In this document: piece by piece, positions 5,723-56,986 of the stretch
Position numbering within the stretch: position 1 is the stretch's first letter
How the letters are laid out: every line of letters starts with the position of its first letter
DNA from: Paramoeba atlantica
Lineage: Eukaryota; Protista; Discosea
Length of the DNA stretch: 64,000 bases
Direction of reading: 5' to 3'
NCBI GenBank assembly: GCA_977017575.1
Contig: CDRNVI010000059.1
Coordinates: 372,001 to 436,000 of the forward strand
Translations under genes and position numbers: made by a program
Notes under the pieces: generated by a model
The model's database searches: none
What the model saw: only the letters and a program-made list of their open reading frames with translations
Told to the model about the DNA's origin: nothing

Positions 5723-5956
5723 CACCAGCTGGCCACCCTATCGTAAAGTGGCCACCTGACCACCCCCCTAAGAAAAAGTGGCCATCCTATGGAAAAGTGG
5801 CCACCTGGCCACCCTATGGAAAAGTGGCCACCTGGCCACCCTCTGGAAAAGTAGCCACCTGGCCACCCTATGAAAAAGTGGCCAGCTGGCCACCCTATGA
5901 AAAAGTGGCCAGCTAGCCCCGCTTTGGTTGGCCAGCTGGCCACCCTCTGGAAAAGT
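5723..5956. repeat. 27-bp palindromic minisatellite, first block
   Basis: Tandem GCCACCTGGCCACCCTATGAAAAAGTG units. Confidence 0.9.
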
Positions 5957-6249
5957 CTCATGGTTGGGTCAGACACCCATTCACACGACAACAAAGTCCT
6001 TATGCACGACCTGGTGTAAGTGTTGGAGGAATCTCCTTAACAAGGAGTAAACAAAGATATAGGAGTAAACAAAGGCCATGCCTTGATCACAAAGACGCTC
6101 CGCATTACGGCGTGGGGATCTCAGGAACGTGCTTCTCATGTGCACAAGAACAGGTGTGAATCAACACACTACCTTCTTACTTAACCTCTTTTACACACAG
6201 CTTGGGTCTTACGGCATACACAAGAGTAGGTGCATACGACGCATAAGAC
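5955..6249 (+). repeat. Copy of an rDNA intergenic-spacer module
   Basis: Near-identical to ~16288-16571 (CTCATGGTTGGGTCAGACACCC...GCATAAGAC). Confidence 0.85.
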
Positions 6250-11387: not shown

Positions 11388-11641
11388 TCGAAAGTTTTCG
11401 AACCTTGAACAACAGGCACACCGTACGGTGCGTCCTAACACAGCCCTCCCGAGTGCTCGTTTGCGCTCGGGGAAGGGAAACCGTCTGTTCCAAACCCCGT
11501 TCGCGGGGTTTGGGGGGACTCTTTTTTTGTTCCTCCTCGTCGACGGCGCAAGCCGTAGACGGCTCAAGGGGGTTTACTCGGCCCGGTGCTACGCGTGGGG
11601 GGGAAACCCCCCACGCGCCCGGATGAAACCGAGTCATGTAT

Positions 11642-11798
11642 AACTTATGACGGTGGATGTCTTGGCTTCCCAATCGATGAAGGACGCGGCAATATGCGAT
11701 AATTCGTACGCATTGCAGAATCAAGCGTAGTACTAAACCTTTGAACGCAACATGTGTGCTGGGTCTCGCACTCAAGCACGTCCACAGTTCAGTGCCGA
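11642..11798 (+). rRNA. 5.8S rRNA
   Basis: GGATGTCTTGGCTTCC...GATGAAGGACGCGGC...TGCGATAA...TTGCAGAATC...TTTGAACGCAA; ends approximate. Confidence 0.9.
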
Positions 11799-11871
11799 TA
11801 ACCTTGCTGGGGAACGACACGTGCCCTGAAATCGAATTCCGTTGGTGTCTCACACCAAAGAAACCATTTTC

Positions 11872-13282
11872 AAGGCCTGAGCTGTGGTCGACCACCCGCT
11901 GAACTTAAGCATATCATTAAGCGGAGGAAAAGAAAACAACTGTGATTCCCCTAGTAGCGGCGAGCGAAGAGGGATTAGCCCAATCCGAATCGGATCACAT
12001 CCGAATTGTGGGGTAAGAGGTCTCAGGAAAGCCTGGACACTCGGACAAGTCTTCCTGGAACGGAGCGCCATAGAGGGTGAGAGCCCCTTGATCCGAGTCC
12101 TCCTCAGGCGGGATTAACTTGAGACTTGCGGAGTAGTACTGCTTGGGAATGCAGTGCGAAGGGCAGGTATACCTCTGCCAAGGCTAAATATCTTGGGAAG
12201 ACCGATAGCATACAAGTAGCGTGAGCGAAAGATGAAAAGCACTTTGGAGAGAGAGTGAAATAGCACCTGAAGCCGTCATAAGATAAGGGATGTACCACTA
12301 TCCAAGACGTGTGTAGGGCACCTCGGGGGCAACCCCGGGGTGTCTTCCGCACACGTCATGTCTGTCGCTGTTCCCACGCCGAGCAAGGGGGTTGGTGTGA
12401 TTTCGCACCTTCGTCACTTTTGTACTCGAGCGTGTGGTTGGGACAGTCTTACCCTTCGGGAGGGATGAAACGGTGGAGATCTCGGCTGCGGCTCCGTCCT
12501 GGGTTTGGAGCGTCTCCCGCCCTCGGGTGGGGGCCTCCGGCTCGGATGGGGTTCGCGGCAGGAGCTCCCGTGTTCGCTCTCCACAGACAGACTTTGAGAT
12601 GGCCATAGGCCACGATGGGGTTCATCCGCCCGTCTTGAAACACGGACCAAGGAGTCTAACAAGTATGCGAGTCATATACTGGAAAGGTATAAGGCGTACT
12701 GAAAGGGAAGCGCGTATGTCCGCGTGAGGTGTCAACCCGTTGTGCGGGGTTATGCCCCGCACCCGGGTGCAACACCGGCCGAGACTTGGCCATGGGCCGG
12801 GTTTTTGAGCCTGAGCATACATGTTGGGACCCGAAAGGTGGTGATCTATGCCTGAACAGGACGAAGCCGAGGGAAACCTGGGTGGAGGTCCGTAGCGATG
12901 TTGACGTGCAAATCACTCGTTGGATTTGGGTATAGGGGCGAAAGACTCATCGAACCACCTAGTAGCTGGTTCACCCCGAAGTTTCCCTCAGGATAGCTGG
13001 TGACAGTAAAGCAGTCGTGTGCGGTAAAGCAAATGATTAGAGGCATTGGCTTCAATTTGATGTCGACCTATTCTCAAACTTTAAACGTGCACAGCATTTG
13101 GCTTGCTTTCATGAAGCCAAAGGTAATGGATGATGTCACCAAGTGGGCCTCTTTCGGTAAGCGGAACAGGCGATGCGGAATGCTCCGCAAGGGAACTTAA
13201 GGCGCCTAAGTGCGGGCTCATAGATACCATGAAGGGTGTTCGTTGATCTAGACAGCAGGACGGTGGCCATGGAAGTCGGAAT

Positions 13283-13316
<34 letters not shown>

Positions 13317-14410
13317 TCAACCAGCCCCGAAAATGGATGGCGCTCAAGCCCGCCGCCGACAGTTCCCCGGAACTGTAACTGTGGGAGGGCACAAGAAACA
13401 CAGTTCCGTGTAGGGGTGCGTGGAGGCAAAGCTGCGAAGCCTTTGGCGTGAGCCTGGGTGGAGCTGCCTCTAGTGCAGATCTTGGTTGTAGTAGCGAATA
13501 TTCAACTGCGGAAATTCCGCGATATATCGTTGAAGGCTGAAGTGGGGAAGGGTTTCGTGTCAACGGCGATCGGACACGAGTCACTCGGTACTAAAGCCAA
13601 CGTTGGACCGCACTTGTGGAACGGGGTGATGGCCGCCCGGGCGCCGCGTTCGCTCACCTCGTGTGGGCGGGCGTCGATGCCTGGGAACTCTACGGCTCCA
13701 CCCAGTTGGCTGAAAGTAAAGCGGGCTTAACATTCCCGCAGCTGACCATGGGAATTTGAGGCGGTAACGCTTTTGAGACGATGCTGGTGACAGTGTGGGA
13801 CGGGCCCGGAAGAGTTCTCTTTTCTTTTGAATGGACTTCCCCCTCCGTTGAGTTCGCGTCGTGCGGTGACGCGGAAGGGGATCCAGCAAAGCCATGCATT
13901 TGTGCGTGGTAGGGAAACCGTCTCACGCTTCAGAAAAAGCCAGCGGGGTCCTATTTCCTGATGGCAGGCCGTACCCATATCCGCATCCGGTCCCCAAGCT
14001 TAGAAAGCTCTAGCCAATAGAACAAGGTAGTCTAAGGGAAGTCGGCAAATTAGATGCGTATGCTCGCGAGAAGCATTGGCTCTGAAGGCAAAGCTGTTGG
14101 GAGCCGGCAAGTCCCTGGGCTCAAGGTCCTGGCTGACGTGCCCGCGTCGCGTGCTCCGCCCGCCTTGCGTGGGTGGGGCGTGTGTGCTGCGGTGTCACGC
14201 TTGACGGGGCCTCCAGGGACTACGCCGACCCTTCGGGGACGGTGCAGCCGGGCAAACTCTCACAGCGCTGAATTGCTGTTTCAGAACTGCTTACCAAGGG
14301 GAATCCAACTGTATAATTAAAACACAGGCTTGCGACGCAGCCAAGTGCTGTATGACGCAAGCTGATTTCTGCCCAGTGCTCTGAATGTCAATGTGACGAG
14401 ATTCACCTAC

Positions 14411-14467
<57 letters not shown>

Positions 14468-15212
14468 TTCTAATTAGAGACGCGCATGAATGGATTAATG
14501 AGATTCCCACTGTCCCTAGCTACCATCTAGCGAACCAACTGCGTCAAGGGAACGGTCTTGAATGATTAAGCGGGGAAAGAAGACCCTGTTGAGTTTGACT
14601 CCAGTCTCAGTTTGCCGGGCGACATAGGAGGTGTAGTCATAGGTGGGAGGTGCTCGAAAGGGTGCCGGTTCTGAAAAACCACTTCTTTTATCGTTGCTCG
14701 GCAAATCCAATGATAAGGCAAAGGGAGTTATGTCTTAAGGGGCTTCACGGCTCCCAGGGCATTCGTGCACCGTCCGAGTCCTACGGGAAATTCAACGGTG
14801 CCAACTCACCTGTTGTAGCTCTAAACCCAGGTGCGGATGTACCAGGGTGAGCCTATGTTTGGAGACAAGACTGAGATGGGGAGTTTGGCTGGGGCGGCAT
14901 ATCTGCTAAACGACAACGCAGGTGTCCTAAGGCGAGCTCAGTGAGGACAGAAACCTCACGTGGCGCACAAGGGCAAAAGCTCGCTTGATCTTAGACTTTC
15001 AGTACGAGTCTAGAATGTGAAAGCATGGCCAGCGATCCTTTGAGCACGTACATTCAGGTATAATGCCAGAGGTGTCATAAAAATTACCACAGGGATAACT
15101 GGCTTGTGGCAGCCAAGCGTTCCTAGCGACGTTGCCGTTTGATCCTTCGATGTCGGCTCTTCCTAGCCTTGCGCCGCAGTTGACGCAAAGGGTCGGATTG
15201 TTCACCCGGATG

Positions 15213-15256
<44 letters not shown>

Positions 15257-15440
15257 TTACCCTACTTAATCAAACATTTCGGCAGGTTTGCCGAGGGAAA
15301 TACGAAGTAGTACGAGAGGAACTTTCGTTTCGCCTCCCTAGCAACAGCGGCCCTTTGAAAAGAGGCGCCGCAAGACCACCAGGCGATGATTAACAGCTGA
15401 ACGCCTCTTAAGCTGGAAATCAATCCCGAAGCAAACTTGG
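11872..15440 (+). rRNA. Large-subunit rRNA (28S equivalent; 3' end approximate)
   Basis: ACCCGCTGAACTTAAGCATAT near the start; CCCGTCTTGAAACACGGACCAAGG; GGGAGTAACTATGACTCTCTTAAGGTAGCC; peptidyl-transferase-region motifs; sarcin-ricin loop AGTACGAGAGGAAC at ~15309; GCTGAACGCCTCTTAAGC near 15400. Confidence 0.97.
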
Positions 15441-15565
15441 GCCTTCTAGGCCACTTGGGCGCAAAACGCGAGCGCGAAAACCATAATTACTCAAGTAATA
15501 CGCGCGGTAGTAACCCTACCCCTATGAAAGAGCGGAGCGTCCAATCACACCCGGAACAGACGATT

Positions 15566-16620
15566 CCTTATGCACGACCTGGTGTAAGTGTTGGAGGAAC
15601 CTCGGTTCCGACTCACTGAGCCCGTGTACGTGCCCATAGGTGCAATTTTGCAATTCAATCTACCTAACAAGGAGTAGGTAACAAGGCCTAACTTAGGCAA
15701 CAACAAGGCAATAGTCTTGACACACACACTCAGATCCCTGCATGGGATCTCACAAACGTGCATTCCATATAAACAACCACAGGGGTGGTCAATAAAAAAG
15801 GACCCCACATTCTCGTCACCAACATCCACGGTGAGTCCTGCACAACCCTCTCTCTTCAAGCTTATACAGCTTCCTCACTATATAAATGAAACAGATGTAG
15901 AGCACATAGCAGGTGTGCTATGTGTGATCATGTGTTGATACACTCTCACTCCACGGTCAAGTCTCAACAACCTCATGGTTGGGTCAGACACCCACTCACA
16001 CGACAACAAAGTCCTTATGCACGACCTGGTGTAAGTGTTGGAGGAACCTCGGTTCCGACTCACTGAGCCCGTGTACGTGCCCATAGGTGCAATTTTGCAA
16101 TTCAATCTACCTAACAAGGAGTAAACAAAGATAACACAAAGGTGTTATGCCTTGATCACAGAGACAAAACCGTCTCGATCACAAAGACTCCGCATTACAG
16201 TGTGGGGATCTCAGGAACGTGCTTCTCATGTGCACAAGAATGTATGTGTTCCACATGCACGAGAGGTACATAAAGCGCTTCATGGTAGTCTCATGGTTGG
16301 GTCAGACACCCACTCACACGACAACAAAGTCTTTATGCACGACCTGGTGTAAGTGTTGGAGGAATCTCCTTAACAAAGATATAGGAGTAAACAAAGGCCA
16401 TGTCTTGATCACAAAGACGCTCCGCATTACGGCGTGGAGATCTCAGGAACGTGCTTCTCATGTGCACAAGAACATGTGTGAATCAACACACTACCTTCTT
16501 ACTTAACCTCTTTTACACACAGCTTGGGTCTTACGGCATACACAAGAGTAGGTGCATACGACGCATAAGACAAAAAAATCAGAATGATCTAGTTGAAAGA
16601 ACCTCCGTTCCGACTCACTG
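15566..16620. repeat. Modular rDNA spacer repeats
   Basis: CCTTATGCACGACCTGGTGTAAGTGTTGGAGGA recurs at ~15566, 16013, 16331 and also at ~6000; other modules (CCTCGGTTCCGACTCACTG; TCTCAGGAACGTGCTTCTCATGTGCACAAGAA) are shuffled between copies. Confidence 0.85.
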
Positions 16621-16832: not shown

Positions 16833-17855
16833 GTGTACATGCCTCTAAGTGCAATTTCGCAAATCAACGAAAACAAATGATCCTTCACAGGGCAGACATA
16901 CTCATGACTCTGCTTTCAAGGCACTGCAGTCATGAGCTGCAGTCATTTTGGGGGCGAGGTTGTCCAGTGATTGACTGCTCGTTACACTCGCTTAGCGATG
17001 AATTCCGATCCTTCATCCCTTCGTCAAAGTCATCCCACTTCCGATTTACGTCATCTATCTTCCCGGAATACGGGAAATTCGTTTTTGAGTGGGAATGTTC
17101 TATGAGAGAGAAAGCACTGAGTATGGAGAGGAAAGCTAGTGAACAAGAGAGCCAAACTACAAATTTTATAAGTAGTGCACGTGAATTTGTTCCGTACATC
17201 GATAAGTAGCGTACCTGGATAAGTAGCGTGCTTGGGGGCACAGATGGGCGTTGTAGTAGTTTGGATGAGTACTCATCGAAACGACCTCTGCACATGGTAC
17301 TTTGGATGAGTACTTTTCACTATATTACCAACGTCTGACTCTGTAAGGCTAAACTGTGAACGTAGCCCTGGGACACGTGTGCTTCTCTCTAGATTCGTGG
17401 GAAGCAATTTGCGAAGCCCAACTACTTGATAACAAATTTTAGTACCCATTTTGGCCGCGCGGGGGCCCCCGCGTGAGCGGGGGTGCGCGCGGCCGCGAAA
17501 CGGCGAGGGCCCGCGTGAGCGGGCCTGAGCCGTACCCCGCGTAGGATTCCCCTGTGCGTCGTTAGTGGGAAGCAATTTGCGAAGCTCACCGATTTTCGTA
17601 GTTTTCTCTACGCAGGCGTTGTCAACGTATGTAGTGAAGTGTAGGATACTGAACGCACGGAAAACGAAAATCAAAAAAAAATCTTGGGTGTTCCACAAAA
17701 GTCCTTGACTTATGCAAAAGTCCTTGACTTCCACCGGCGCTGAGAACCTATGTCTGCCACTTCCGCAGGATTGTGTATTTTTGTACTATATTGCATCACC
17801 TATAACCTGGCAACAATTTACGTGATTGCTGACTACGGAAGAAAGTACTCATGAG

Positions 17856-28753: not shown

Positions 28754-29019
28754 CGGTAACTCCTTTATAGCCACAGCCTTCAATGTATCCATTAGTCGCT
28801 ACAAATACAAATTTCTAAATTGAGGGAGATGCTACTCCCTCGCTACTTATTTTCATGTTTTAGACCGTATGTCCATATTTTTCCGTGACTGCTCGATCTC
28901 TGAAAAAGAAGCGCCCATTAGATGAATCGGGCTCTATTGAAAAGCTTACAAGCTTTGGAGGATGACCTTCTTCCAAGTGGAGTGCGGCGGACAGAAGCTA
29001 CACTAGGTCATTAATAATT

Positions 29020-29914
29020 TTAGGCTCTTCGTTAAACGCGGTGGTTGTTTTCAACTTAGAAGTCACTCATGCTACGCTCTCCGAGTTGAAAACCACCACC
29101 GCGTTTAACGAAGAGCCCAAAAAGGAAACTTTAGCCTGGAAAACGGAAAGATTATAGCCAAAAATAGCCGAATTTCGGGTAAAAATGGGGTAATTTTCGC
29201 GTATTTTTGCTGTCAGAGCACTAAATCCGACATTTGCGCGTGGGAAATCACTCGTAGGCATGAATGGAAGCCTACCGAACGTATTGGGTAGAGAATGCGA
29301 CTCCAACCATACCATTCTTTCGACACAAAAATGCCACTTTAGGTCCGAAAAATACTTTTTCACCTTTTTTAGTCAAAAATGGGTCATTTTGAGGGGCGCA
29401 CCACGGTTCGAAGAAGGGATACCTTGCGAAAGCAACTGCGGAGAAAGCTAGTGTAGGTCCCAAATTATCAAAATACAATAGGGGAAACGATTTTGGAAAA
29501 ATATTCTTTTTGTCATTTTTTTCGACAAGCTGAAATTTTTTTCAAAAAAATTTTTCCTAAAAAATCCGTACTTGGCGGGCCCGTCATGCGGATACGCGGG
29601 GGGGTCACCCCCGGGTAGGGGGGTGGAAAATGCGCGCCAAGACCCCGGCTACCCTTTCTGCGGTTTTTTTTCGAAAACTAATTTTTTCGAAAAAATTTGC
29701 TCGACCATGACCCCCCCTGGACCCCCCCCCATGGACCCCCCCCATGGACCCCCCATTTTTTTTAATTTTTTTTTTCAGTTTTGGACCACCGGAGCCCCCT
29801 TTTATATTTTTTTCTTCTATTATATTACTGTGTTCCTCTTTATATTTTCACTGTTTTTGTTCACTTTTTTTTCAATAATCGAGGGTAGAGCGGTAGTTTT
29901 ACAACCACCGCAAT
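29020..29914 (-). mobile_element. Hairpin-ended dispersed element family A, copy A1
   Basis: ~105-bp long hairpin (AGGCTCTTCGTTAAACGCGGTGGTTGTTTTCAAC...) at one end and GCGGTAGTTTTACAACCACCGC-AAT at the other; body shared with six other copies. Confidence 0.85.
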
Positions 29915-40014: not shown

Positions 40015-40892
40015 CCAGTTTCATAGTCAATATGCACAAACAAAACAAAGCAAATAACGTGAACGAAAAGTAGAATTGAATAAATTAAACCCCCCTCACA
40101 GTTATTATTCACATTTTTTATTATTTACAAGTACACTTATTGAGGGATATTCACCGTATCTCCATACGGTGAGCATCTAACTCGCTTACTAAGGTTAATT
40201 CCGCGAGCCCAAAATCGGCATAAAACGAGCACAAAAACGATTTTTTGAAAGTTTTAAAAACAGGGCTATGTCTTATCAATCAATCTCTGTAATACTCCAA
40301 AAATTAAAAAAATCGAGTGCAGTCAGCATTTTTTAGAACCCTTTTACCAAAAACAACGACTCGGAATGCGGCTCAGAGACGGACATTTTAAATCCGAAAA
40401 AAACACGAAGATGCTTGACTATGTTCCCAAAATTGACAGAACGTTCTTTGAAGTTTGATGAATATTTTTGAGCTCCTGAACTAACTTCAAGAACTACCTT
40501 TCTTTTTGAAACGCATTTCACTCGCCCACGGCATAACAAATGAACGAAAAAAAGGTATGATTTTCTCGGCCTTGAAAAAGTGGCCAGCTGGCCAACACCC
40601 CCTGGCAACCACCCCCTGGCACAATGGTGAGCTGGCCAACACCCGGAAAAATCGCCATCTGACTATCGGAAATTTTGACCTTGTCGGACCCCTCCTGCTC
40701 GTACCAGGTGGGGTACCCCCAGGGGGGGGGGGGGGGAATTATCGCCGCGGCCTACTCTACCACTTCGCCGCCCTCGATTTCGAAAAGCAAAAAATTCGAA
40801 AAAAAAAATCGTACGGTATGCCCGCCCCCATGGACCCCCCATTTTTTTCAATTTTTTTTTCTTTTTTTGACCACCGGATCCCCCTTTTATAT

Positions 40893-41771
40893 TTAGGCTC
40901 TTCGTTCAACGCGGTGGTTGTTTTCAACTTAGAAGTCACTCATGCTGCGCGATTCGCGTTGAAAACTACCGCCGCGTTTAACGAAGAGCCTAAAAAAGGA
41001 AATTTGGCCTGGAAAACGGAAAGATTATAGCCAAAAATAGCCGAATTTCTGGTAAAAATGGGGTCATTTTCGCGTATTTTTGCTCTCAGAGCACTAAATC
41101 CGACATTTGCGCGCGGGAAATCACTCGTAGGCATGAATGAAAGCCTACTGAACGTATTGGGTAGAGAATACGACTCCAACCATACCATTCTTTCGACACA
41201 AAAATGCCCCTTTAGGTCCGAAAAATACTTTTTCACCTTTTTTAGTCAAAAATGGGTCATTTGGAGGGGCGCCCCACGGTTCGAAGAAGTGATACCTTGC
41301 GAAAACGACTGCGGCGAAAGCTAGTGTACGTCCCAAACTATCAAAATACAATAGGGGAAACGATTTTGGAAAAATATTTTTTCTGTCATTTCTTTCGCCA
41401 AGTTGAAATGTTTTTCAAACGTTTTTTTCCTAAAAAATCCGAGCTTGGCGGACCCGTCCTGCGGATACGCGGGGGGGTCACCCCCGGGTAGGGGGGTGGA
41501 AAATGTGCGCCAAGACCCCGGCTACCCTTTTCAAAAAAAATTGCTCGACCATGCCCCCCCCCCTGGACACCCCCCTGTACACGCCCCCTGGACCCCCCCT
41601 GGACCCCACATTTTTTTCGATTTTTTTTTTCAGTTTTGGTCCACCGGAGCCTCCTTTTATATTTTTTTCTTCTATTATATTACTGTGTTCCCCTTTATAT
41701 TTTCACTGTTTTTGTTCACTTTTTTTTCAATAACCGAGGGTAGAGGGGTAGTTTTACAACCACCGCAATAA
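40893..41771 (-). mobile_element. Family A element, copy A2
   Basis: Same body and both hairpin ends as A1. Confidence 0.85.
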
Positions 41772-43450
41772 CGTTTTTTAGTAAGACAACGTTTTTTATT
41801 AAGACAACGGTTTTTATTAAGACAACTGTTTTTATTAGGACAATGATATTTATTATGACAACGTTTTTTATTAAGACAACGTTATTTATTAAGACAACGT
41901 TTTTTATTAAGACAACGTTTTTTAGTAAGACAACTGTTTTTATTAGGACAACGTTTTTTATTAAGACAACGTTGTTTGTTAAGACAATGTTTTTTATTAA
42001 GACAACGTTTTTTAGTACGACAACGTTTTTTATTAAGACAACGTTTTTTATTAAGACAACGGTTTTTATTAAGACAACGTTTGTTGTTAAGACAACGCTT
42101 TTTAGTAAGACAACGTTCTTTATTCAGGCAACTTTTTTTATTAGGACAACGTTGTTTGTTTAAGACACCTTTTTTTATTAGGACAACGTTTTTTATTGTG
42201 ACAATGTTTTTTATTAAGACAACGTTGTTTGTTAAGACAACGTTTTTGATTAAGAGAACGGTTTTTATTAAGACAATGTTTTTTATTAAGACAACGCTTT
42301 TTAGTAAGACAACGTTTTTTAGTAAGACAACGTTTTTGATTAAGAGAACGTTTTTTATTAAGACAATGTTTTTTATTAAGACAACGTTTTTGATTAAGAG
42401 AACGTTTTTTATTAAGACAACGTTTTTGATTAAGGGAACGGTTTTTATTAAGACAATGTTTTTTATTAAGACAATGTTTTATATTAAGACAACGTTTTTT
42501 AGTAAGACAATGTTTTTTAGTAAGACACCTTTTTTTATTAGGACAACGTTTTTTATTAAGACAACAATTTTTATTAAGACAACGTTTTTTATTTAGACAA
42601 CGTTATTTGTTAAGACAACGTTTTTTATTAAGACACCCTTTTTTATTCAGGCAACGTTTTTTATTAAGACAACGTTTTTTATTAAGACAACGTTTTTTAG
42701 TAAGACAACGTTGTTTGTTAAGACAACGTTTTTGATTAAGAGAACGTTTTTTATGAAGACAACGTTTTTTATTAAGACAACGTTTTTTATTAAGACAACG
42801 TTGTTTGTTAAGACAACGTTTTTGATTAAGAGAACGGTTTTTATTAAGACAACGTTGTTTGTTAAGACAACGTTTTTGATTAAGAGAACGGTTTTTATTA
42901 AGACAATGTTTTTTATTAAGACAACGTTTTTTAGTAAGACAACGTTTTTTAGTAAGACAACGTTTTTGATTAAGAGAACGTTTTTTATTAAGACAATGTT
43001 TTTTATTAAGACAACGTTTTTGATTAAGAGAACGTTTTTGATTAAGGGAACGGTTTTTATTAAGACAATGTTTTTTATTAAGACAACGTTTTTTAGTAAG
43101 ACAATGTTTTTTAGTAAGACACCTTTTTTTATTAGGACAACGTTTTTTATTAAGACAACAATTTTTATTAAGACAACGTTTTTTATTTAGACAACGTTAT
43201 TTGTTAAGACAACGTTTTTTATTAAGACACCTTTTTTTATTCAGACAACGTTTTTTATTAAGACAACGTTTTTTATTAAGACAACGTTTTTTATTAAGAC
43301 AACGTTGTTTGTTAAGACAACGTTTTTGATTAAGAGAACGGTTTTTATTAAGACAATGTTTTTTATTAAGACAACGTTTTTTATTAAGACACCTTTTTTT
43401 ATTAAGACAACGTTTTTTATTAAGACAACGTTTTTTATTAAGACAACGTT
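41770..43450. repeat. 18-bp AT-rich minisatellite (~93 units)
   Basis: GACAACGTTTTTTATTAA units with recurring higher-order variant blocks. Confidence 0.97.
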
Positions 43451-44380
43451 GCGGTAGTAAAACTACCGCTCTAGCCTCGATTGCGGTGGTTGTAAAACTA
43501 CCGCCCTACACTCGATTATTGAAAAAAAAGTGAACAAAAACAGTGAAAATATAAAGAGGAACACAGTAATATAATAGAAGAAAAAAATATAAAAGGGGGC
43601 TCCGGTGGTCCAAAACTGAAAAAATGGAAAATAATGTGGGGTCCAGGGGTGGGGGGGGGCAGGGGGGGTCATGGTCGGCCCAGGGGGGTCATGGTCGAGC
43701 AAATTTTTTCGAAAAAATTAGTTTTCGAAAAAAAACCGCAGAAAGGGTAGCCGGGGTCTTGGCGCGCATTTTCCACCCCCCTACCCGGGCGTGACCCCCC
43801 CGCGTATCCGCAGGACGGGTCCGCCAAGTTCGGATTTTTTCGGAAAAAAAAATTTGAAAAAAATTTCAACTTGGCGAAAAAAATGAAAAAAGAAATATTT
43901 TTCTAAAATCGTTTCCCCTATTGCATTTTGATAGTTTGGGACGTACACTAGCTTTCGCCGCAGTTGTTTTCGCAAGGTATCACTTCTTCGAACCGTGGAG
44001 CGCCCCTTAAAATGACCCATTTTTGACTAAAAAAGGTGAAAAAGTATTTTTCGGACCTAAAGGGGCATTTTTGTGTCGAAAGAATGGTATGGTTGGAGTC
44101 GCATTCTCTACCCAATACGTTCGGTGGGCTTTCATTCATGCCTACGAGTGATTTCCCACGCGCAAATGTCGGATTTAGTGCTCTGACAGCAAAAATACGC
44201 GAAAATTACCCCATTTTTACCAGAAATTCGGCTATTTTTGGCTATAATCTTTCCGTTTTCCAGGCTAAACTTTCTCTTTTAGGCTCTTCGTTAAACGCGG
44301 CGGTAGTTTTCAACGCGAATCGCGCAGCATGAGTGACTTCTAAGTTGAAAACAACCACCGCGTTTAACGAAGAGCCTAAA
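43449..44380 (+). mobile_element. Family A element, copy A3 (small hairpin duplicated); partial copy follows at ~44384-44510
   Basis: Inverted relative to A2; GCGGTAGTAAAACTACCGC then ATTGCGGTGGTTGTAAAACTACCGC. Confidence 0.85.
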
Positions 44381-44518
44381 AAAGAATATAAAGGGGAACA
44401 TAGTAATACAAGTGTATAATAGAAGAAAAAAATATAAAAGGTGGCTCCGGTGGTCCAAAACTGAAAAAAAAAATTGAAAAAAATGGGGGGTCTATGGGGG
44501 GGGTCAAGGGAGGGCCAC

Positions 44519-44697
44519 TCGCACACTGATAATGCATAAAACTCGCACACTGATAATGCATAAAACTCGCACTGATAATGCACATTGGCACACTGATAAT
44601 GCATATTAGCACACTGATAATCCATATAGGCACACTGATAATGCATAAAAACTCGTACACTGATAATGCATAAAACTCGCACACTGATAATGCATAT
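44519..44697 (+). repeat. 20-24 bp minisatellite GCACACTGATAATGCATAAAACTC
   Basis: Tandem units; reverse-complement array at 47291-47436. Confidence 0.9.
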
Positions 44698-44804
44698 TTT
44701 GAACAAGCCCTTCGAAAAAAAATTGTGCCCTTCAAAAAAAAATTGAGCCCTTCAAAAAAATTGGAGAAAGGCCCTTGAAAAAAAATTCTAGAAAAAATGG
44801 CGGA

Positions 44805-45085
44805 AGCCAAGACCTTGTTTACCCTTCTGCAAGATAACAACGTCTGACGTTAGTGGGAAGCTATTTGCGAAGCCCAACATTTCCACCATACCCAACCCGT
44901 AATAAGCCAAGACCTTGTTTACCCGTCTGCAAGATAAAAACGTCTGACGTTAGTGGGAAGCTATTTGCGAAGCCCAACAATTCCACCATACCCCACCCTT
45001 AATAAAGCCAAGACCTTGTTTATCCGTGTGCAAGACAAAAACGTCTGACGTTAGTGGGAAGTAATTTGCGAAGCCCAACCGTCTG
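44805..45085 (+). repeat. ~100-bp tandem triplication
   Basis: AGCCAAGACCTTGTTTA at ~44805, 44905, 45006; each unit carries GTTAGTGGGAAG(C)WATTTGCGAAGCCCAAC. Confidence 0.9.
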
Positions 45086-45383
45086 CAAGGTAAAATAGAA
45101 ATGGAAAGCCCATTCTAGGGATCGGAAATATGCAGTTGAAGGAAAGTTGGTAAAACTCAAAATTGGAAGAATTTATTATGTAGCCCATGCCGCTATCAAG
45201 AGAGTCACATCTTATGCAGAAGAGAAGAACCCGCCCAGCTTGGAGTTGAGTAGATGTCCAAACATGTTTAAAAATTGTATGGAAGAGTGAAATACGCACG
45301 TAAAGAGTGAAATACGCACATGGAAGAGTGAAATACGCACATAAAAAGCGCTAGAGAAAGGGACTGATGGGCCCTTCGGAGAT

Positions 45384-46385
45384 TCAAGAGGACTCCTGGG
45401 AACTGTCGACCAAAAATTGTGGGCGAGTTTTCCGAAGAATTTCTACGAACTCAGATGGCGATTGTTCTTGGAGCACTTCTTTTGGTCGAGCATTTATATC
45501 CCGCGAAACGGAGTCAAGATCCTTCTGCGAGATGTCACTAAACAAACGTCGTTTCGGGTAGAAATCTCGTACTACGCCGTTGAAATTTTCAACACCCCCC
45601 TTCTCCCAACTTGCATACGGTTTAAAAAAATACGAAGAGCAATTAAGCGACTGATTTACTTTCTCGTGTTTTGCAAACTCGGTTCCGTTATCATATGTTA
45701 TGGAGTGAACCAAGAAACCTTGAAGAGCACTGGTTATGTTTTCAGCGACTAGTGCTGATTTCTTGCATGTGAGCTTCTTTAGTATCCCGAACCGACTCTT
45801 TCGCTCAACCAAGGTGAGGAAGAATCCGCTGTGCCTTGTGCCTTCTATAAGGTCACATTCCCAATCGCCGTATCGCTCCCGATTGTTAACAATATTCGGT
45901 CGCTCCTCAATGTCGGTGCGATTCGGAATACCGGTACGGTTGGTTCCCCGACGGCGAGGTTGACCACGTCTTCCTCCACGGCGCAGACAACTCTCCAAGT
46001 TCCCATGTTGACCATCATCCCGCTTGATAAACCCGTATATTGACGTTCGGGATACTTTAATATCATCTTCTTTGCACAAGACTACTGTAATTTGCTGTGG
46101 GCTAAAGCGCCTGCGTAGGAGAGACACGACTTTGTCTTTAATCTCTCCTTTAATCATGCATGGGCGCGGCTGGCTTTTCAGCATGGACTGCTTCGCTGCT
46201 CGTTCAGCGCGCCTGGCACTGTACGTATCATTTCGAAGTCCGCGTGCGAGTTCCCGGCTCAGAGAGGATTGATTCATATTCAATTTCGCGGCAATTTGGA
46301 CTTGGGTGAAATTCTGTTGATTGTAAAGCACCTCAATCATGGTGCGGTCCTCTGAATCTATACGTTGACTTCGTGGTTCACTCAT
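45384..46385 (-). CDS. IS30-family DDE transposase, intact (333 aa from the ATG)
   Basis: N-terminal HTH (QVQIAAKLNMNQSSLSRELARG), FSPQQI, VSRTSIYGFI, ERPNIVNNRERYGDWECDLIEG, LTLVERKSRF, SITYDNGTEF, PYASWEKGGVENFNGVVR, INARPKEVL: all IS30 signature motifs with D, D and E intact. Confidence 0.95.
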   Translation of the reverse strand: MSEPRSQRIDSEDRTMIEVLYNQQNFTQVQIAAKLNMNQSSLSRELARGLRNDTYSARRAERAAKQSMLKSQPRPCMIKGEIKDKVVSLLRRRFSPQQITVVLCKEDDIKVSRTSIYGFIKRDDGQHGNLESCLRRGGRRGQPRRRGTNRTGIPNRTDIEERPNIVNNRERYGDWECDLIEGTRHSGFFLTLVERKSRFGILKKLTCKKSALVAENITSALQGFLVHSITYDNGTEFAKHEKVNQSLNCSSYFFKPYASWEKGGVENFNGVVRDFYPKRRLFSDISQKDLDSVSRDINARPKEVLQEQSPSEFVEILRKTRPQFLVDSSQESS

Positions 46386-46403
46386 ACTAAAATGCAACAA
46401 AAA

Positions 46404-47290
46404 TTATTGCGGTGGTTGTAAACCTACCGCTCTACACTCGATTATTGAAAAAAAAGTGAACAAAAACAGTGAAAATATAAAGGGGAACACAGTAATATAA
46501 TAGAAGAAAAAAATATAAAAGGGGGCTCCGGTGGACCAAAACTGAAAAAAAAAATTGAAAAAAATGGGGGGTCCAGCGGGGGGGTCCAGGGGGGGGTCAT
46601 GGTCGAGCAAATTTTTTCGAAAAAATTAGTTTTCGAAAAACAACCGCAGAAGGGGTAGCCGGGGTCTTGGCGCGCATTTTCCACCCCCCTACCCGGGGGT
46701 GACCCCCCCGCGTATCCGCAGGACGGGTCCGCCAAGCTCGGATTTTTTCGGAAAAAAACGTTTGAAAACAAATTCAACTTGGCGAAAGAAATGACAAAAA
46801 AAATATTTTTCCAAAATCGTTTCCCCTATTGCATTTTGATAGTTTGGGACCTACACTGGCTTTCTCAGCAGTTGTTTTCGCAAGGTATCCCTTCTTCGAA
46901 CCGTGGTGCGCCCCTCCAAATGACCCATTTTTGACTAAAAAAGGTGAAAAAGTATTTTTCGGACCTAAAGGGGCATTTTTGTGTCGAAAGAATGGTATGG
47001 TTGGAGTCGTATTCTCTACCCAATACGTTCAGTAGGCTTTCATTCATGCCTACGAGTGATTTCCCACGCGCAAATGTCGGATTTAGTGCTCTGAGAGCAA
47101 AAATACGCGAAAATGACCCTACTTGTACCAGAAATTCGGCTATTTTTGGCTATAATCTTTCCGTTTTCCAGGCCAAATTTCCTTTTTTAGGCTCTTCGTT
47201 GAACGCGGCGGTAGTTTTCAACGCGAAGCGCGCAGCATGAGTGACTTCTAAGTTGAAAACAGCCACCGCGTTGAACGAAGAGCCTAAAAA
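46404..47290 (+). mobile_element. Family A element, copy A4, 18 bp upstream of the IS30 ATG
   Basis: TTATTGCGGTGGTTGTAAACCTACCGC ... GTTGAACGAAGAGCCTAAAAA. Confidence 0.85.
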
Positions 47291-47436
47291 TGCATCATCA
47301 GTGTGCATTATGCATTATCAGTGTGCATTATGCATTATCAGCGTGCATTATGCATTATCAGCGTGCATTATGCATTATCAGTGTGCATTATGCATTATCA
47401 GTGTGCGAGTTTTATGCATTATAAGTGTGCCTATAT
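47291..47436 (-). repeat. Inverted copy of the GCACACTGATAATGCAT minisatellite
   Basis: TGCATTATCAGTGTGCATTA units; terminal GTGTGCCTATAT is the reverse complement of ATATAGGCACAC at ~44624. Confidence 0.9.
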
Positions 47437-47555
47437 CCTCTTAGAGAGAGGCCGCCAGGAATATTGCGATGAGTGGATTTGAACTCGCCGTCTGAGCACC
47501 ATGTGCTTCAAACTTTGAGTTCTTGCCACTCCCCCACCTCCGCTTCTTGCCACTC

Positions 47556-48955
47556 CGCTTCTTGCTAGCACTGTGCGTGAGGGTAACACGTACTCTTTTC
47601 GTTCCTTTCTTATTTTCAAAGAAAGTACAACATTCGCAAATGCGTAATGTTTTGCCTCAGGCTTTGTTAGAGCCCTTTCAGCTGTCCCCAATTGCTATGA
47701 TCACCAATTGCTATCATGGCGGAAGTGGCGGAGTGGCAATAATTCAAAGTTTGAATCACATGGTGCTCAGACGGCGAGTTCAAACCCACTCATCGCAATA
47801 TTCCCGGCGGCCTCACTCTAAGAGGCTGGGCTGATAACCGACTAAGCCCAGTACTCGGAGGACCGTCCCGGACCCTCCCCTCAGGGAACCAGCTCCCTTA
47901 CCCGGCTTACACCTCTTGGGTAAGCCGTGTTGACGTACAGTTCGTCGACGCAGCGTGTTGGCAACAGCACGTTGGTGCCGCCTTGGACAAGCGGAAACTG
48001 GTAGAGGACGTCGGCCCCGGAACTTCCAAATCTGTCTGTGAAGGGTCTGGCTTGCCAGTGACCATCCGGAGCAATCCGGAAATGATGATCACCCTGGTGG
48101 GGAGGGGGGGGCAGGGGGTACCCATCGGAATTGTTGAAAAACTAGTTATTTTGTCATTCAATTTGATTCATACGTCTACCTTTTTTCCTTGCGCCTCCTC
48201 CTTCCTCTGCGGCCTTGCGTGTCACACACTTCCGGGTAAAGTTTGGCCTTTGTAGGTGTATTATCGGCACAGGGTGGAGAAATATCGAATGAAATCAAAG
48301 AGTATACAGGTATAGAAGGCTCGAAACTCTCAAAAAAGTGGTCTAGGAGTTGATTTGGGAAAAATATATTTTTTCACTTTCACCCATAAATTTTTAGTTT
48401 CTTTTTGCAAAATTTCAAAAATTGCTATGATCAGAACTAGTTATTTTGTCACTAAATTCGATTCATACATATTGGTGAAACGATATTTTGGTGAAACGAT
48501 ATCGGGCACGAAATCGGGCCACAAATCGGGTACGACGAATTAACCTATGGTAGCGAGGGAGTAGTGCAGATTGAAAGGGGCGAGGGAGATACGAAGCAAC
48601 AGGCGTGGCAGATTCCCACTGAAAAGAAATGGTATCTCCCCGCACGAAAAACGCCTTTTCGCTTTCTAGCTCGTAGACAAACTTCGTGCAGGGAGATACC
48701 ATTTCTTTTCAGTGGGAATCTGCCACACACAACAACAACAAAGACACTGATATTGAAATATCAGTTGACGGATTTGTAGTTCATACTAGTAACGAAGCAT
48801 ACAAAAATACAATATCACCTAGAATTTGCGCGGTGAAGCACCTTCCACAGCCCTGTCATCCATGTATCCTAGTTACTTTCTTTGGAAATGCCTCTTTAGG
48901 GCGAATGTGTCTTCCAGCAACTCGCCTTCATATTCATTTGACCTTCTGACCTGTT
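47556..48955 (+). repeat. Segmental duplication with ~56056-57853
   Basis: Colinear SINE-B, family C body, D hairpin and LINE 3' end; the second copy is ~400 bp longer, matching the nested SINE-B3 insertion. Confidence 0.85.
47718..48089 (+). mobile_element. SINE-B copy B1 (plus an inverted head fragment at ~47437-47545)
   Basis: A-box-like TGGCGGAGTGG, B-box-like GAGTTCAAACCC, structured core, TCCGGAGCAATCCGGA hairpin and GATGAT tail; 5' boundary uncertain. Confidence 0.65.
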
Positions 48956-52061: not shown

Positions 52062-52976
52062 TTATTGCGGTGGTTGTAAAACTACCGCTCTACACTCGAT
52101 TATTGAAAAAAAGTGAACAAAAACAGTGAAAATATAAAGAGGAACACAGTAATATAATAGAAGAAAAAAATATAAAAGGGGGCTCCGGTGGTCCAAAACT
52201 GAAAAAAAAATTTGAAAAAAATGGGGGGTCCAGGGGGGGGGTCCAGGGGGGGGGTCCAGGGGGGGGTCCAGGGGGGGGGGCATGGTCGATCAAATTTTTT
52301 CGAAAAAATTAGTTTTCGAAAAAAAACCGCAGAAAAGGGTAGCCGGGGTCTTGGCGCGCATTTTCCACCCCCCTACCCGGGGGGTGACCCCCCCGCGTAT
52401 CCGCAGGACGGGTCCGCCAAGTTCGGATTTTTTCGGAAAAAAACGTTTGAAAAAAAAATTCAACTCGGCGAAAAAAATGACAAAAAAAATATTTTTCCAA
52501 AATCGTTTCCCCTATTGTATTTTGATAGTTTGAGACCTACACTGGCTTTCTCAGCAGTTGCTTTCGCAAGGTATCCCTTCTTCGAACCGTGGTGAGCACC
52601 TCAAAATGACCCATTTTTGACTAAAAAAGGTGAAAAAGTATTTTTCGGACCTAAAGGGGCATTTTTGTATCGAAAGAATGGTATGGTTGGAGTAGCATTC
52701 TCTACCCAATACGTTCGGCAGGCTTCCATTCATGCCTTAGAGTGATTTCCCACGCGCAAATGTCGGATTTAATGCTCTGACAGCAAAAATACGCGAAAAT
52801 CACCCCAATTTTACCCGAAATTCGGCTATTTTTGGCTATAATCTTTCCGTTTTCCAGGCTAAATTTCCTTTTTTAGGCTCTTCGTTTAAACGCGGCGGTA
52901 GTTTTCAACGCGAAGCGCGCAGCATGAGTGACTTCTAAGTTGAAAACAACCACCGCGTTTTAACAAAGAGCCTAAA
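52062..52976 (+). mobile_element. Family A element, copy A5
   Basis: Both hairpin ends present; abuts the truncated LINE. Confidence 0.85.
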
Positions 52977-53795: not shown

Positions 53796-53892
53796 TATTA
53801 CTGTGTCCCTCTTTATATTTTAACTGTTTTTGTTCACTTTTTTTTCAATAATCGAGTGTAGAGCGGTAGTTTTACAACCACCGCAATTTCTT

Positions 53893-54598
53893 TTTTAGGC
53901 TCTTTGTTAAACGCGGCGGTAGTTTTCAACGCGAAGCGCGCAGCATGAGTGACTTCTAAGTTGAAAACAACCACCGCGTTTAACAAAGAGCCTAAAAAAG
54001 GAAATTTAGCCTGGAAAACGGAAAGATTATAGCCAAAAATAGCCGAAATTCGGGTAAAATTGGGGTGATTTTCGCGTAGTTTTGCTCTCAGAGCACTAAA
54101 TCCGACATTTGCGCGTGGGAAATCACTCTAAGGCATGAATGGAAGCCTATTGAACGTATTGGGTAGAGAATGCGACTCCAACCATACCATTCTTTCGACA
54201 CAAAAATGCCCCTTTAGGTCCGAAAAATACTTTTTTCACCTTTTTTTAGTCAAAAATGGGTCATTTTGAGGTGCTCACCACGGTTCGAAGAAGTGATACC
54301 TTGCGAAAACAACTGCGGAGAAAGCTAGTGTAGGTCCCAAACTATCAAAATACAATAGGGGGAAACGATTTTGGAAAAGTATTTTTTTTGTCATTTTTTT
54401 AGCCCCGAGACCCCCCCACGGAGCCCCCCCAGATCCCCCATTTTTTTCAATTTTTTTTTTCAGTTTTGGACCACCGGAGCCCCCTTTTATATTTTTTTCT
54501 TCTATTATATTACTGTGTTCCCCTTTATATTTTCATTGTTTTAGTTCACTTTTTTTGCAATAATCGAGGTAGAGCGGTAGTTATACAACCACCGCAAT
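53893..54598 (-). mobile_element. Family A element, copy A6 (internally deleted; extra end fragment at 53796-53887)
   Basis: Both hairpin ends present. Confidence 0.8.
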
Positions 54599-54799
54599 GA
54601 AAAATTAGATAAAGTGGGACGATATATGGCAGCCCCCTGGGGGAAAAGAGATAAGCTTGTGAAGACAAGTGAGGTAAACTACGGAACAATGGCAAGTTGA
54701 ATGGCAAATTATGAAGATATAAAGAAGTCTGTACAACGAGGATTTGGCACCCTTACAAAGTTAATGCCACTCGTAAAATACAAGGAGCGTATAAGGAGA

Positions 54800-55620
54800 T
54801 TATTGCGGTGGTTGTAAAACTCCCGCTCTACCCTCGATTATTGAAAAAACAGTGAACAAAAACAGTGAAAATATAAAGAGGAACACAGTAATATAATAGA
54901 AGAAAAGCGGCTCCGGTGGTCCAAAACATTTTAAAAAAAATCGGACCCTTGGAGGGTCCATGGGGGGGGGGTCCAGTGGGGGTCATACCGCACGAATTTT
55001 TTTTGAAAAATTATTTTTCGAAACAAAATAGCAGAAGGGGTAGCCGGGGTCTTGGTGCGTATTTTCCACCCCCTACCCGGGGGTGACCCCCCCTCGTATG
55101 CGCAGGACGGGTCCGACAAGTTCGGATTTTTTCGGAAAAAAAATATGTAAAACAATTTCAACTTGGCGAAAAAATGGCAAGAAGAAATATTTTTCCAAAG
55201 TTGTTTCGCCTATGGTATTTTATCATTGGTCTACGTCCTTCTAGCATTCTACGTCATTGGTTTTGCGAGATGTCGCTTCTTGAAGCCGTGGTACGCCCCT
55301 CAAAATGACCGATTTTTGACCCAAAAAATGCGAAAAAGTAATTCTCTACCCAATACGGACTGTAGCCTCGAATGCATGCTTACGAGCGTTTTGCCACGAG
55401 CAAATGTCGAATTTAGTGCTCTAAGAGCAAAAATACTCAAAAATCACCCCAATTTTACCCGAATTTCGGCTATTTTTGGCTATAATCTTTCCGTTTATCG
55501 GGCTAAATTTTCTTTTTTAGGCTCTTCGTTAAACGCGGCGGTAGTTTTCAACGCGAAGCGCGCAGCATGAGTGATTTCTAAGTTGAAAACAACCACCGCG
55601 TTTAACGAAGAGACTAAAAA
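54800..55620 (+). mobile_element. Family A element, copy A7 (diverged)
   Basis: TTATTGCGGTGGTTGTAAAACTCCCGC ... GTTTAACGAAGAGACTAAAAA. Confidence 0.8.
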
Positions 55621-56211
55621 AGAATGAGTAGATCAACAATGCTTTTGGAGAGCAATGATGTACTTAAACAGCAATAATCAACTTAGTCTGAATCTTCTTG
55701 TTCATATGTCCACCAGGAATCTGGGAATTAGAGTCGGATAGTTCCTTCGATTTGAAAAAATTCAATATGGAACCATCTTTTAGGCCTTGGGGTAACGCCC
55801 GCTTGGGGCTTCAAACTTTGAATTTTGCCACTCTGCCACCTCCGCCTATGTACTCATACTTAAATGTACGATGTTCAGGGTTTTGATCGCCCTGTGTTGT
55901 GGCACATTTAGTAGCTCCAGTATGTGCCGCTTCATCAGGGGAACTGTCAGTTCCACCGGAATGTTCGCTTTGCACACTCTTTGCCGGTGTATAATTCACC
56001 TTCTTCAGCAACAAAGAGTTGCCATTGCTCGTAAATCTGAGCTGCGCGTTTGTGCTTCTTGCTAGCACTGCGTGAGGGTAACACGTACCCTTTTCGCTCC
56101 TTTCTTATTCTCAAAGAAAGTACAACATTCGCAAATGCGTAATGTTTTGCCTCAGGCTTTGTTAGAGCCTTTCGGCTGTCCCCAATTGCTATGATCACCA
56201 ATTGCTATCAT

Positions 56212-56986
56212 GGCGGAGGTGGCGCAGTGGCAATAATTCAAAGTTTGTATCACATGGTGCTCAGACGGCGAGTTCAAACCCACTCATCGCAATATTCCTG
56301 GCGGCCTCACTCTAAGAGGCTGGGCTGATAACCGACTAAGCCCAGTACTCGGAGGACCGTCCCGGACCCTCCCCTCAGGGAACCAGCTCCCTTACCCGGC
56401 TTACAGCTCTTGGGCAAGCTGTGTTGACGTACAGTTCGTCGACGCAGCGTGCTGGCAACAGCACGTTGGTGCCGCCTTGGACAAGCGGAAACCCCAAAAT
56501 CCAATCCAAATCATTCCGGATTGCTCCGGATGGTCACTGGCAAGCCAGGCCCTTCACAGACAGATTTGGAAGTTCCGAGGCCGACGTCCTCTACCAGTTT
56601 CCGCTTGTCCAAGGCGGCACCAACGTGCTGTTGCCAACACGCTGCGTCAACGAACTGTACGTCAACATGGCTTACCCAAGAGGTGTAAGCCGGGTAAGGG
56701 AGCTGGTTCCCTGAGGGGAGGGTCCGGGACGGTCCTCCGAGTACTGGGCCCAGTCGGTTCTCAGCCCAGCCTCTTAGAGTGAGGCCGCCAGGAATATTGC
56801 GATGAAGAGTGAGGCCGCCAGGAATATTGCGATGAGTGGGTTTGAACTCGCCGTCTGAGCACCATGTGCTTCGGCCACTAAACTAAGCGGAAACTGGTAG
56901 AGGACGTCGGCCTCCGGAACTTCCAAATCTGTCTGTGAAGGGTCTGGCTTGCCAGTGACCATCCGGAGCAATCCGGAAATGATGAT
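56212..56986 (+). mobile_element. SINE-B copy B2, interrupted by B3
   Basis: Colinear with B1 once 56493-56894 is removed. Confidence 0.75.
56493..56884 (-). mobile_element. SINE-B copy B3 nested antisense in B2, 10-bp TSD
   Basis: TSD AAGCGGAAAC at 56483-56492 and 56885-56894; (TTGGA)n tail; internal ~36-bp duplication near 56780-56815. Confidence 0.85.

Follow-up and report, generated by a model that had tools for sequence, protein, structure and literature searches.

A probable eukaryote-adapted DNA transposon family with an IS30-family transposase in a euglenozoan genome

The 64-kb stretch of contig CDRNVI010000059.1 analysed here (positions 372,001 to 436,000; "the window" means this stretch at its full length) carries an element that encodes an intact transposase of IS30, a family of bacterial insertion sequences (ISs). 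We consider it very probable that this element is one copy of a multi-copy DNA transposon family that is adapted to a eukaryotic genome and uses a transposase of the bacterial family. Dispersed copies, conserved inverted termini, target site duplications (TSDs) and an empty site were all found in eukaryotic DNA, as in class II transposons with terminal inverted repeats (TIRs). Judged by sequence, the protein is an IS30 transposase and the element around it is a non-canonical IS30 in its size, its ends and its TSD. Full-text literature searches returned neither the name "IS30EU" nor any report of IS30 in euglenozoans or in connection with Repbase; a eukaryotic IS30 lineage is without prior report in the literature searched.

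Transposase gene and family copies

The transposase gene lies on the minus strand at 45384-46385, within a frame that is open from 45384 to 46400. Translation from the ATG at 46385 gives 333 aa without stop or frameshift, with two helix-turn-helix (HTH) domains at the N-terminus and a DDE core. The protein scores above the curated threshold of the IS30 family transposase model NCBIfam NF033563 (248.7 bits; cut-off 80) and less well against the sister-family profiles IS481 (60 bits; cut-off 224) and IS21 (28 bits; cut-off 160), both of whose cut-offs it misses. Alignment with host and bacterial homologues places the catalytic triad at D174, D232 and E266, in invariant or near-invariant columns of the bacterial relatives; the second Asp and the Glu are 33 residues apart, and HTH domains together with a DDE triad of about this spacing are characteristic of IS30 proteins. 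The Pfam signals for HTH_38 (7-49), HTH_32 (70-117) and rve (173-257) are all sub-threshold, equally so in the bacterial relative P0014, and no solved structure matched the window transposase in sequence. The sequence-only reading of this DNA had described a full IS30 transposase with HTH and DDE and no lesions, which these results bear out. The window transposase ends in a clade-specific C-terminal tail, RPQFLVDSSQESS; the form ...RPxxL(V/M)DSSQ(E/D)S is common to the host subfamilies with a complete C-terminus, except L003, and is missing from the bacterial proteins.

A search of 5.8 billion proteins returned seven relatives at 56-97% identity, all from the ENA assembly ERZ24900291, followed by a sharp break to hundreds of bacterial IS30 transposases at no more than 46% identity. 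Four additional relatives with more than 50% identity came from an exhaustive search of 1.8 billion cluster representatives, and the two that were looked up belong to the same assembly. ERZ24900291 holds at least 10 further copies (56-97% protein identity). Nine host loci (L001-L007, L009 and L010), with ten copies between them, were retrieved; the survey covers those parts of the genome that are reachable via protein look-ups. No bacterial neighbour gene exists at any of the 10 host loci examined. L002 is flanked by housekeeping genes for PIG-P, kinesin, ribosomal protein S17, a DEAH helicase and GRP94, and the best named relatives of its PIG-P, kinesin and GRP94 are euglenozoan. A repeat of the window, repeat A, is also present in L003, L004, L005 and L007. 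Logan contigs from three separate samples of the organism further contained the open reading frame (ORF), including variant sequences. Four public runs were compared with 44300-47700; they are stored as short contigs of 80-450 nt, too short to bridge the junctions, and the contig joints found in this region are A-to-A repeat joins that are not evidence on the element.

Inverted arrays, target site duplications and the empty site

Five subfamilies share one plan, consisting of a 5' tip GGC(A/G)CCC, an array of units beginning with GCAC, a leader rich in T, the ORF, a non-coding stretch of 0.6-1.3 kb, an inverted array and a CCACTC tip. The arrays hold 2-24 tandem units of 17-24 bp that start with GCAC and mostly end with (G/T)CAT, and the two arrays of an element are mutually inverted; element length is 2.0-2.5 kb and the tips measure 6-7 nt. 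Four other copies are two-ended, in agreement with the expectation that the same inverted arrays would recur in the genome. L002, whose frame has one stop at codon 276, carries about 12 units of GCACATTCACATGCAT on its 5' side (5722-5968) and about 10 units on its 3' side (7585-7797); L003, with an intact gene of 328 aa, carries 8 units of GCACCCTTATCTGTCAT (5816-5973) and 2 units (8289-8329); the frameshifted L010 carries 15 units of GCACATTGATAATGCAT (1033-1356) and 9 units (3004-3189); and the degraded L007 has its arrays at 4633-4746 and 8544-8643. Arrays are single-sided at L001, L005, L006 and L009. In L001 the contig ends before the 3' side is reached, and its 5' array (5403-5898) consists of 24 copies of the unit found in the window, GCACACTGATAATGCAT, followed by 57 nt to the ATG with no A element between them. 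The unit sequence differs by transposase subfamily while the overall plan is constant, as would be expected for binding sites that co-evolve with the transposase.

Element boundaries were set where the flanks of copies from the same subfamily diverge (window against L001, L007 against L010 and window against L005). L007 and L010 have the end GGCGCCC+GCACATTG in common and differ upstream of it; the window copy and L005 have the end CCACTC+GCACACTG in common and differ outside it; and the window copy and L001 split exactly at the outer GCACAC of the 5' array. TSDs, which the sequence-only reading had proposed to look for in other copies, were found with a length of 4 bp in L010 (GGTT/GGTT), L003 (GGGG/GGGG) and, with three of four positions matching, L002 (AGGT/CGGT); the flanks of L007 show no TSD. 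For L002, ATATTTAAT or GCCG had first been considered as the TSD, together with an outer inverted repeat CCCCCGTTTAAGCGCAC; these readings were abandoned once the same-subfamily comparisons had defined the tips.

The element of L003 lies inside a copy of repeat A, whose two halves correspond to neighbouring stretches of A that overlap by 6 nt. Its junctions read ...TAGGGGGG[GGCACCC ... GAGTGG]GGGGTGG..., and the corresponding empty site, CCGGGTAGGGGGGTGGAAAATG, is unchanged in 6 of 6 intact A copies. Deleting the element and one GGGG regenerates this empty site exactly, direct evidence that the element transposed into host DNA and duplicated 4 bp in doing so. The nesting is reciprocal, since a repeat A copy, A4, lies within the IS30 element of the window.

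In the window copy, which is encoded on the minus strand, the 3'-side tip is at 44515-44520 and reads CCACTC on the plus strand from outside to inside; the flanks of the window copy and L005 differ up to CCACTC+GCACAC, and L003 and L010 have the same tip. The 3'-side subterminal array (44521-44697, minus strand) consists of about 8 units of GCACACTGATAATGCAT with 3-7-nt spacers, presumed to be transposase binding sites, and the 5'-side array (47290-47430, minus strand) of 7 units in inverted orientation, its edge at 47430 being set by flank divergence from L001. Tandem Repeats Finder delimits the two arrays at 44517-44696 (period 21-24, about 8 copies) and 47290-47430 (period 20, 6.8 copies). 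The 17-mer GCACAYTGATAATGCAT, allowing up to 2 mismatches, occurs 7 times on the plus strand (44521-44695) and 7 times on the minus strand (47290-47430), against a chance expectation of 0.04, and nowhere outside the two arrays within the 64 kb; the outermost 43 nt of both arrays are 98% complementary. The arrays of opposite orientation that had been claimed at 44519-44697 and 47291-47436 are therefore real. Between the 3'-side array and the gene are A-rich 20-25-bp repeats, AGCCCTTCAAAAAAAAATTG (44706-44794, minus strand; counterparts in L001 at 7924-7974 and in L005), 2.7 copies of a 100-bp repeat (44804-45079, minus strand) that carries the 32-nt motif GGCTTCGCAAAT.GCTTCCCACTAACGTC on its sense strand, and a 3' non-coding region (45080-45383, minus strand; 97.5% identical to L001) with three copies of a 20-21-bp repeat at 45283-45345. 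The identity between L001 and the window copy is 97.5% over 1445 nt. In the region of the 100-bp repeat, L001 has 3.2 copies and a palindromic module that is missing from the window copy.

Upstream of the gene, a remnant of the T-rich 5' leader (46386-46405, minus strand) has, 2 nt upstream of the ATG, an AG that might serve as a trans-splice acceptor, and A4 (46406-47290, plus strand) lies between this remnant and the 5' array. A4 is missing from the 97.5%-identical L001, indicating that it entered the window copy later. The earlier estimate that removal of A4 would put the ATG about 20-30 nt from the right array holds for the window copy, where the distance is 20 nt, but not for the uninterrupted sister L001 with its 57 nt; the insertion of A4 was therefore associated with a loss of about 37 nt. 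At the 5' tip position (47431-47437, minus strand) GATATAG stands in place of G(G/A)C(A/G)CCC, so that the tip is degenerate or replaced. A second repeat family, a 107-nt inverted pair at 47437-47543 and 47719-47825 (also at 56213-56319 and 56054-56492), abuts the 5' end of the element and may have replaced or disrupted this tip. The window copy is young and its transposase intact, but the element is damaged by the insertion of A4, the loss of about 37 nt of leader, the loss of the palindromic 3' module and the degeneration of the 5' tip.

Most IS30-like elements of the host contain a near-perfect palindrome of about 170-180 nt in their 3' non-coding part (DNA fold -62.9 kcal/mol, z -8.3). It was located at 7358-7537 in L002, 7385-7542 in L001, 7954-8127 in L003, 6188-6284 in L007, 4232-4330 and 5432-5514 in L005, and 3333-3403 and 4013-4084 in L006; none was seen outside the IS30-like elements, and it is missing from the window copy. 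The palindrome is 97-99% identical between subfamilies whose transposase genes are synonymously saturated, and it could be a site-specific palindromic miniature inverted-repeat transposable element, an exchanged cassette or a constrained cis element. An Rfam search with the L002 element gave only sub-threshold miRNA-like matches on the palindrome, which were taken as chance.

Repeat A is a non-coding sequence of about 900 bp with six copies in the window (43480-44382, 46406-47290, 29018-29914, 40892-41769, 52064-52976 and 53888-55625) and a fragment at 44415-44514; A4 is 92-96% identical to the five others. One copy, with the fragment, lies just left of the element and A4 lies between the right array and the ATG, so that family A repeats stand on both sides of the transposase gene, as had been noticed from the sequence. 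The repeat ends in a 43-nt hairpin (e.g. 44272-44314 with 44344-44386) and its word depth in public reads is about 1000-fold that of the IS30 ORF; the hairpin at its 3' end is part of the basis for suggesting that it is a Helitron-like non-autonomous element. Between two inverted A copies is a 1.7-kb minisatellite (41770-43450) made of 93 copies of the 18-bp unit AACGTTTTTTATTAAGAC. The motif said to be shared with the ribosomal DNA (rDNA) spacer proved to be real but short: the 32-nt GGCTTCGCAAATTGCTTCCCACTAACG (transposon sense) occurs once in the rDNA intergenic spacer (17554-17585), in every 100-bp repeat of the window copy (44842-45075), and also in L001, L002, L003, L005, L006 and L007.

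Selection, origin and host lineage

Between host subfamilies the synonymous sites are saturated (pS 0.82-0.87) while pN is 0.23-0.33, which indicates a working gene throughout the long diversification of the lineage. The GC content at third codon positions (GC3) is 0.47-0.51 in the host copies, 0.39-0.47 in host genes and 0.72 in the bacterial relative. Between array and start codon the host copies have T-rich leaders, of which several end in AG immediately upstream of the ATG and none contains a Shine-Dalgarno motif; by its sequence, a T-rich leader ending in AG fits spliced-leader (SL) trans-splicing.

An intact ORF under strong purifying selection between subfamilies could also be that of a domesticated gene, which the sequence-only reading had offered as its alternative; the window copy or one family member would then be kept for a host function, with the repeats incidental. 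The tail ...LVDSSQE(S), kept in an alignment of four subfamilies and missing from bacterial relatives, would agree with this, as would L004, in which an open 340-aa IS30-like frame (3102-4124, protein P0002) keeps the LVDSSQE tail and has lost the catalytic Glu (E266K, GGVKRFNG). No inverted arrays were found at L004, and an inverted partner of its GTCTGCCACC repeat was sought and not found; if any family member is non-catalytic and perhaps co-opted, P0002 is on its sequence the strongest candidate. For the family, however, domestication is not supported and we regard it as improbable. Where a lone conserved locus lacking termini would be expected of a domesticated gene, the family is multi-copy, has conserved tips, arrays and TSDs, and includes several decayed members; the window copy and L001 differ at only 15 sites with a dN/dS of 0.44, which shows no strong constraint on young copies; and active transposon lineages also show purifying selection between subfamilies.

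Two trees were built, the first from the 120 best proteins including eight host sequences and the second, midpoint-rooted, with 67 more distant IS30 representatives added. The eight host sequences form one clade on a long stem in the 120-protein tree (SH-aLRT 100). In the enlarged tree this clade is intact and lies within a 47-row clade together with the "near" bacterial group (SH-aLRT 97), leaving 65 representatives outside. The trees group the host transposase with IS30 proteins only; together with the profile scores this sets it apart from IS481EU and IS3EU. The phylogeny proposed as a check on the sequence-only reading thus gathers all host copies into a single clade, and this host lineage is, as far as sequences under midpoint rooting can tell, nested within the diversity of bacterial IS30. 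The nearest sampled bacterial members are of Verrucomicrobia type, e.g. P0014 at locus L008, which belongs to the "near" group.

The divergence inside the host clade is deep, at about 1 substitution per site, and the trees have no true root; both would agree with an old eukaryotic lineage that predates the IS30 radiation and has been passed on vertically, without horizontal transfer from bacteria. To this we give only a slim chance. The window protein is 46% identical to bacterial IS30 over its full length and reaches 249 bits against an equivalog-level NCBIfam model, the host clade is nested inside bacterial diversity, no closer eukaryote relative was found in the 5.8-billion-protein collection or the 1.8-billion-representative library, and a survey of 430 eukaryote genomes recovered only IS607-derived sequences (PMC3673617).

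The GRP94 encoded next to L002 has named relatives that are nearly all euglenozoan (Rhabdomonas 50%, Bodo 48%, Hemistasia 47%, Diplonema 44%, Perkinsela and trypanosomatids 42-45%). Compared with full-length named and EukProt-labelled relatives, it is 42-50% identical to those of bodonids, trypanosomatids, prokinetoplastids, diplonemids and euglenids, a range that does not separate the classes. The window also contains a complete eukaryotic rDNA unit (9364-15645) with a small subunit rRNA gene of 2025 nt, a 5.8S gene and a large subunit (LSU) gene of 3773 nt, in which the LSU match spans the whole 3401-position Rfam model and is of standard length. Metakinetoplastids (trypanosomatids and bodonids) have five extra internal transcribed spacers and an elongated operon, and euglenids up to twelve, whereas the 28S of diplonemids and prokinetoplastids is standard and contiguous (PMC9082867). 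The standard-length LSU therefore speaks against trypanosomatids, bodonids and euglenids, in which the LSU is multiply fragmented, and the host is more likely a diplonemid or prokinetoplastid on these sequences. The chromosome had been called kinetoplastid, which is unsupported as written: the evidence reaches Euglenozoa only, and the rDNA is unlike that of a metakinetoplastid. Other class II transposase genes occur near the copies, at L001 3832-4902, L009 1-2587 and L007 8947-9837, and are of the types DDE_Tnp_4 (Harbinger-like), DDE_1 and DDE_3 with HTH_Tnp_Tc3 (pogo/Tc1-like) and CENP-B_N, indicating that the host euglenozoan is rich in DNA transposons.

Alternatives, proposed mechanism and significance

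The arrays could in principle be a pre-existing palindromic satellite that was targeted by the element or trapped it. Their copy number varies widely between near-identical copies, from 7 units in the window to 24 in L001, in the manner of minisatellites. But the unit sequence tracks the transposase subfamily, the arrays end in conserved tips with the TSD outside them, the 17-mer is found nowhere else in the window, and in L003 the arrays and the gene are inserted as one block at one position of an A repeat for which the empty site is known; this last observation refutes the satellite reading, and we hold it to be very unlikely. Least credible of all is a bacterial IS30 misjoined to eukaryotic DNA by the assembly or brought in by contamination, because, although the transposase is clearly of a prokaryotic family and the window-copy junctions lack long-read bridging, its best non-self protein (46% identity) is far from the near-identity to a bacterium that would mark such an artefact, no host locus has flanking bacterial genes, the elements nest reciprocally with a host repeat about 1000-fold deeper in the reads than the ORF, GC3 is host-like and a bacterial IS has a different architecture. 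For practical purposes, both contamination and domestication are excluded.

Several points weigh against a eukaryote-adapted, mobile IS30 family. The window copy has no TSD in its flanks and a degenerate 5' tip, and its junctions are not bridged by independent long reads, the public runs being kept as short contigs. The TSD length comes from three elements, of which one lies in a G-run and another has a mismatch, and the tip boundaries could be off by about 1 nt. Damage affects most of the copies seen, P0002 carries E266K, and any current mobility is putative. The role of the arrays as binding sites is presumed from their sequence. The direction of transfer depends on a midpoint-rooted tree, the family is known from one assembly only, and the only RNA-labelled public run is tiny and holds nothing. 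Against these stand the copies, the TSDs, the tree and the absence of a near-identical bacterium, which support the proposal of the sequence-only reading that a horizontally acquired IS30 became a eukaryotic transposon with tandem-repeat inverted termini.

It is proposed that an IS30 element near those of Verrucomicrobia-type bacteria entered an ancestor of the host euglenozoan, took on the host base composition and split into at least five subfamilies with the frame under purifying selection. At each end, a short tip and an array would have taken the place of the single 25-bp inverted repeat (IR) of the bacterial element. The array units would be bound by the two N-terminal HTH domains, as subterminal repeats are by the CACTA, Ac and P transposases; the bound transposase would pair both ends, and the DDE core would cut at the tips and integrate with a 4-bp staggered cut. 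The T-rich leader with its AG before the ATG may let the gene be SL-trans-spliced out of host polycistronic transcripts. For the fuller account, in which the family derives from a bacterium-to-euglenozoan transfer, had its ends rebuilt as multi-site inverted arrays, retains mobile copies and has subfamilies that share and exchange a 170-nt palindromic cassette, we see the odds as slightly favourable.

Like bacterial IS30 (ISfinder), the family encodes one transposase, about 320-340 aa long, in which two HTH domains at the N-terminus precede a DDE triad with the 33-residue D2-E spacing, and bacterial relatives are 43-46% identical to the window protein over 94% of its length. The compact IS30 form of about 1.0-1.25 kb with single 20-30-bp IRs is seen in L008, where P0014 is encoded by a canonical IS of 1.1 kb that has single 25-bp IRs and lies in a compact neighbourhood of bacterial sugar-metabolism genes, and not in the host elements, which measure 2.0-2.5 kb and have arrays of 2-24 units with tips. 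TSDs of bacterial IS30 are 2-3 bp long; those of the host elements, in a small sample, are 4 bp (L010 and L003, with a three-of-four match in L002). A further trait of bacterial IS30 elements is transposition by way of a circle or dimer whose IR ends abut. The host elements differ in addition by their T-rich leader, which has no Shine-Dalgarno motif, by a long 3' region rich in repeats, by the C-terminal tail and by a GC3 like that of the host.

Among eukaryotic elements the closest parallels are prokaryotic IS families that have been naturalised in eukaryotes, of which a 2023 paper named three "ISxEU" superfamilies only, IS481EU, IS3EU and ISL2EU (PMC10045372); here the IS family is a different one. 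In IS481EU and IS3EU, too, a DDE-transposase IS family is established as a class II transposon in restricted eukaryotic hosts, and IS481, IS3 and IS30 transposases are related integrase-like enzymes. IS481EU has TSDs of about 4, 15 or 25 bp and IS3EU has 6-bp TSDs with TA..TA termini, compared with 4 bp here, and subterminal tandem arrays are not described for either in that paper (PMC10045372). Among all major IS groups surveyed in 430 eukaryote genomes, only IS607 relics without sign of transposition were found (Gilbert and Cordaux 2013, PMC3673617). Those IS607-like sequences likewise reflect prokaryote-to-eukaryote transfer followed by purifying selection on some copies, but they encode a serine recombinase and have no TIRs, TSDs or evidence of transposition (PMC3673617), whereas termini, TSDs and an empty site are present here. 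Among the DNA transposons of the Diplonema genome, TATE, MULE and Helitron are reported in its genome paper and IS-type elements are not listed.

Inverted ends made of multiple short repeated motifs are shared with CACTA/En-Spm, Ac/Ds, the P element and Foldback, all of which have transposases unrelated to that of IS30. The subterminal repeats of CACTA/En-Spm, Ac/Ds and the P element are transposase-binding sites, and by analogy the ends are probably recognised and paired in a similar way here. The description of the termini as foldback-like is apt as regards inverted repeated ends; it is an analogy only, since the arrays here end in short conserved tips outside the repeats, which Foldback elements lack, and the arms of Foldback are much longer.

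Prokaryotic ISs almost never become established in eukaryotes, and this case shows what must change for a bacterial IS to live in a nucleus. The family offers intact and decayed copies, defined ends, TSDs, an empty site and a traceable bacterial sister group. As a small single-protein transposase with a defined 17-nt unit, its putative binding unit, it could become a genetic tool for protists of the host type. Euglenozoa, whose class II elements are poorly described, gain a further DNA transposon family, and its adaptations are visible in the end architecture, the leader, the base composition and the new C-terminal tail.

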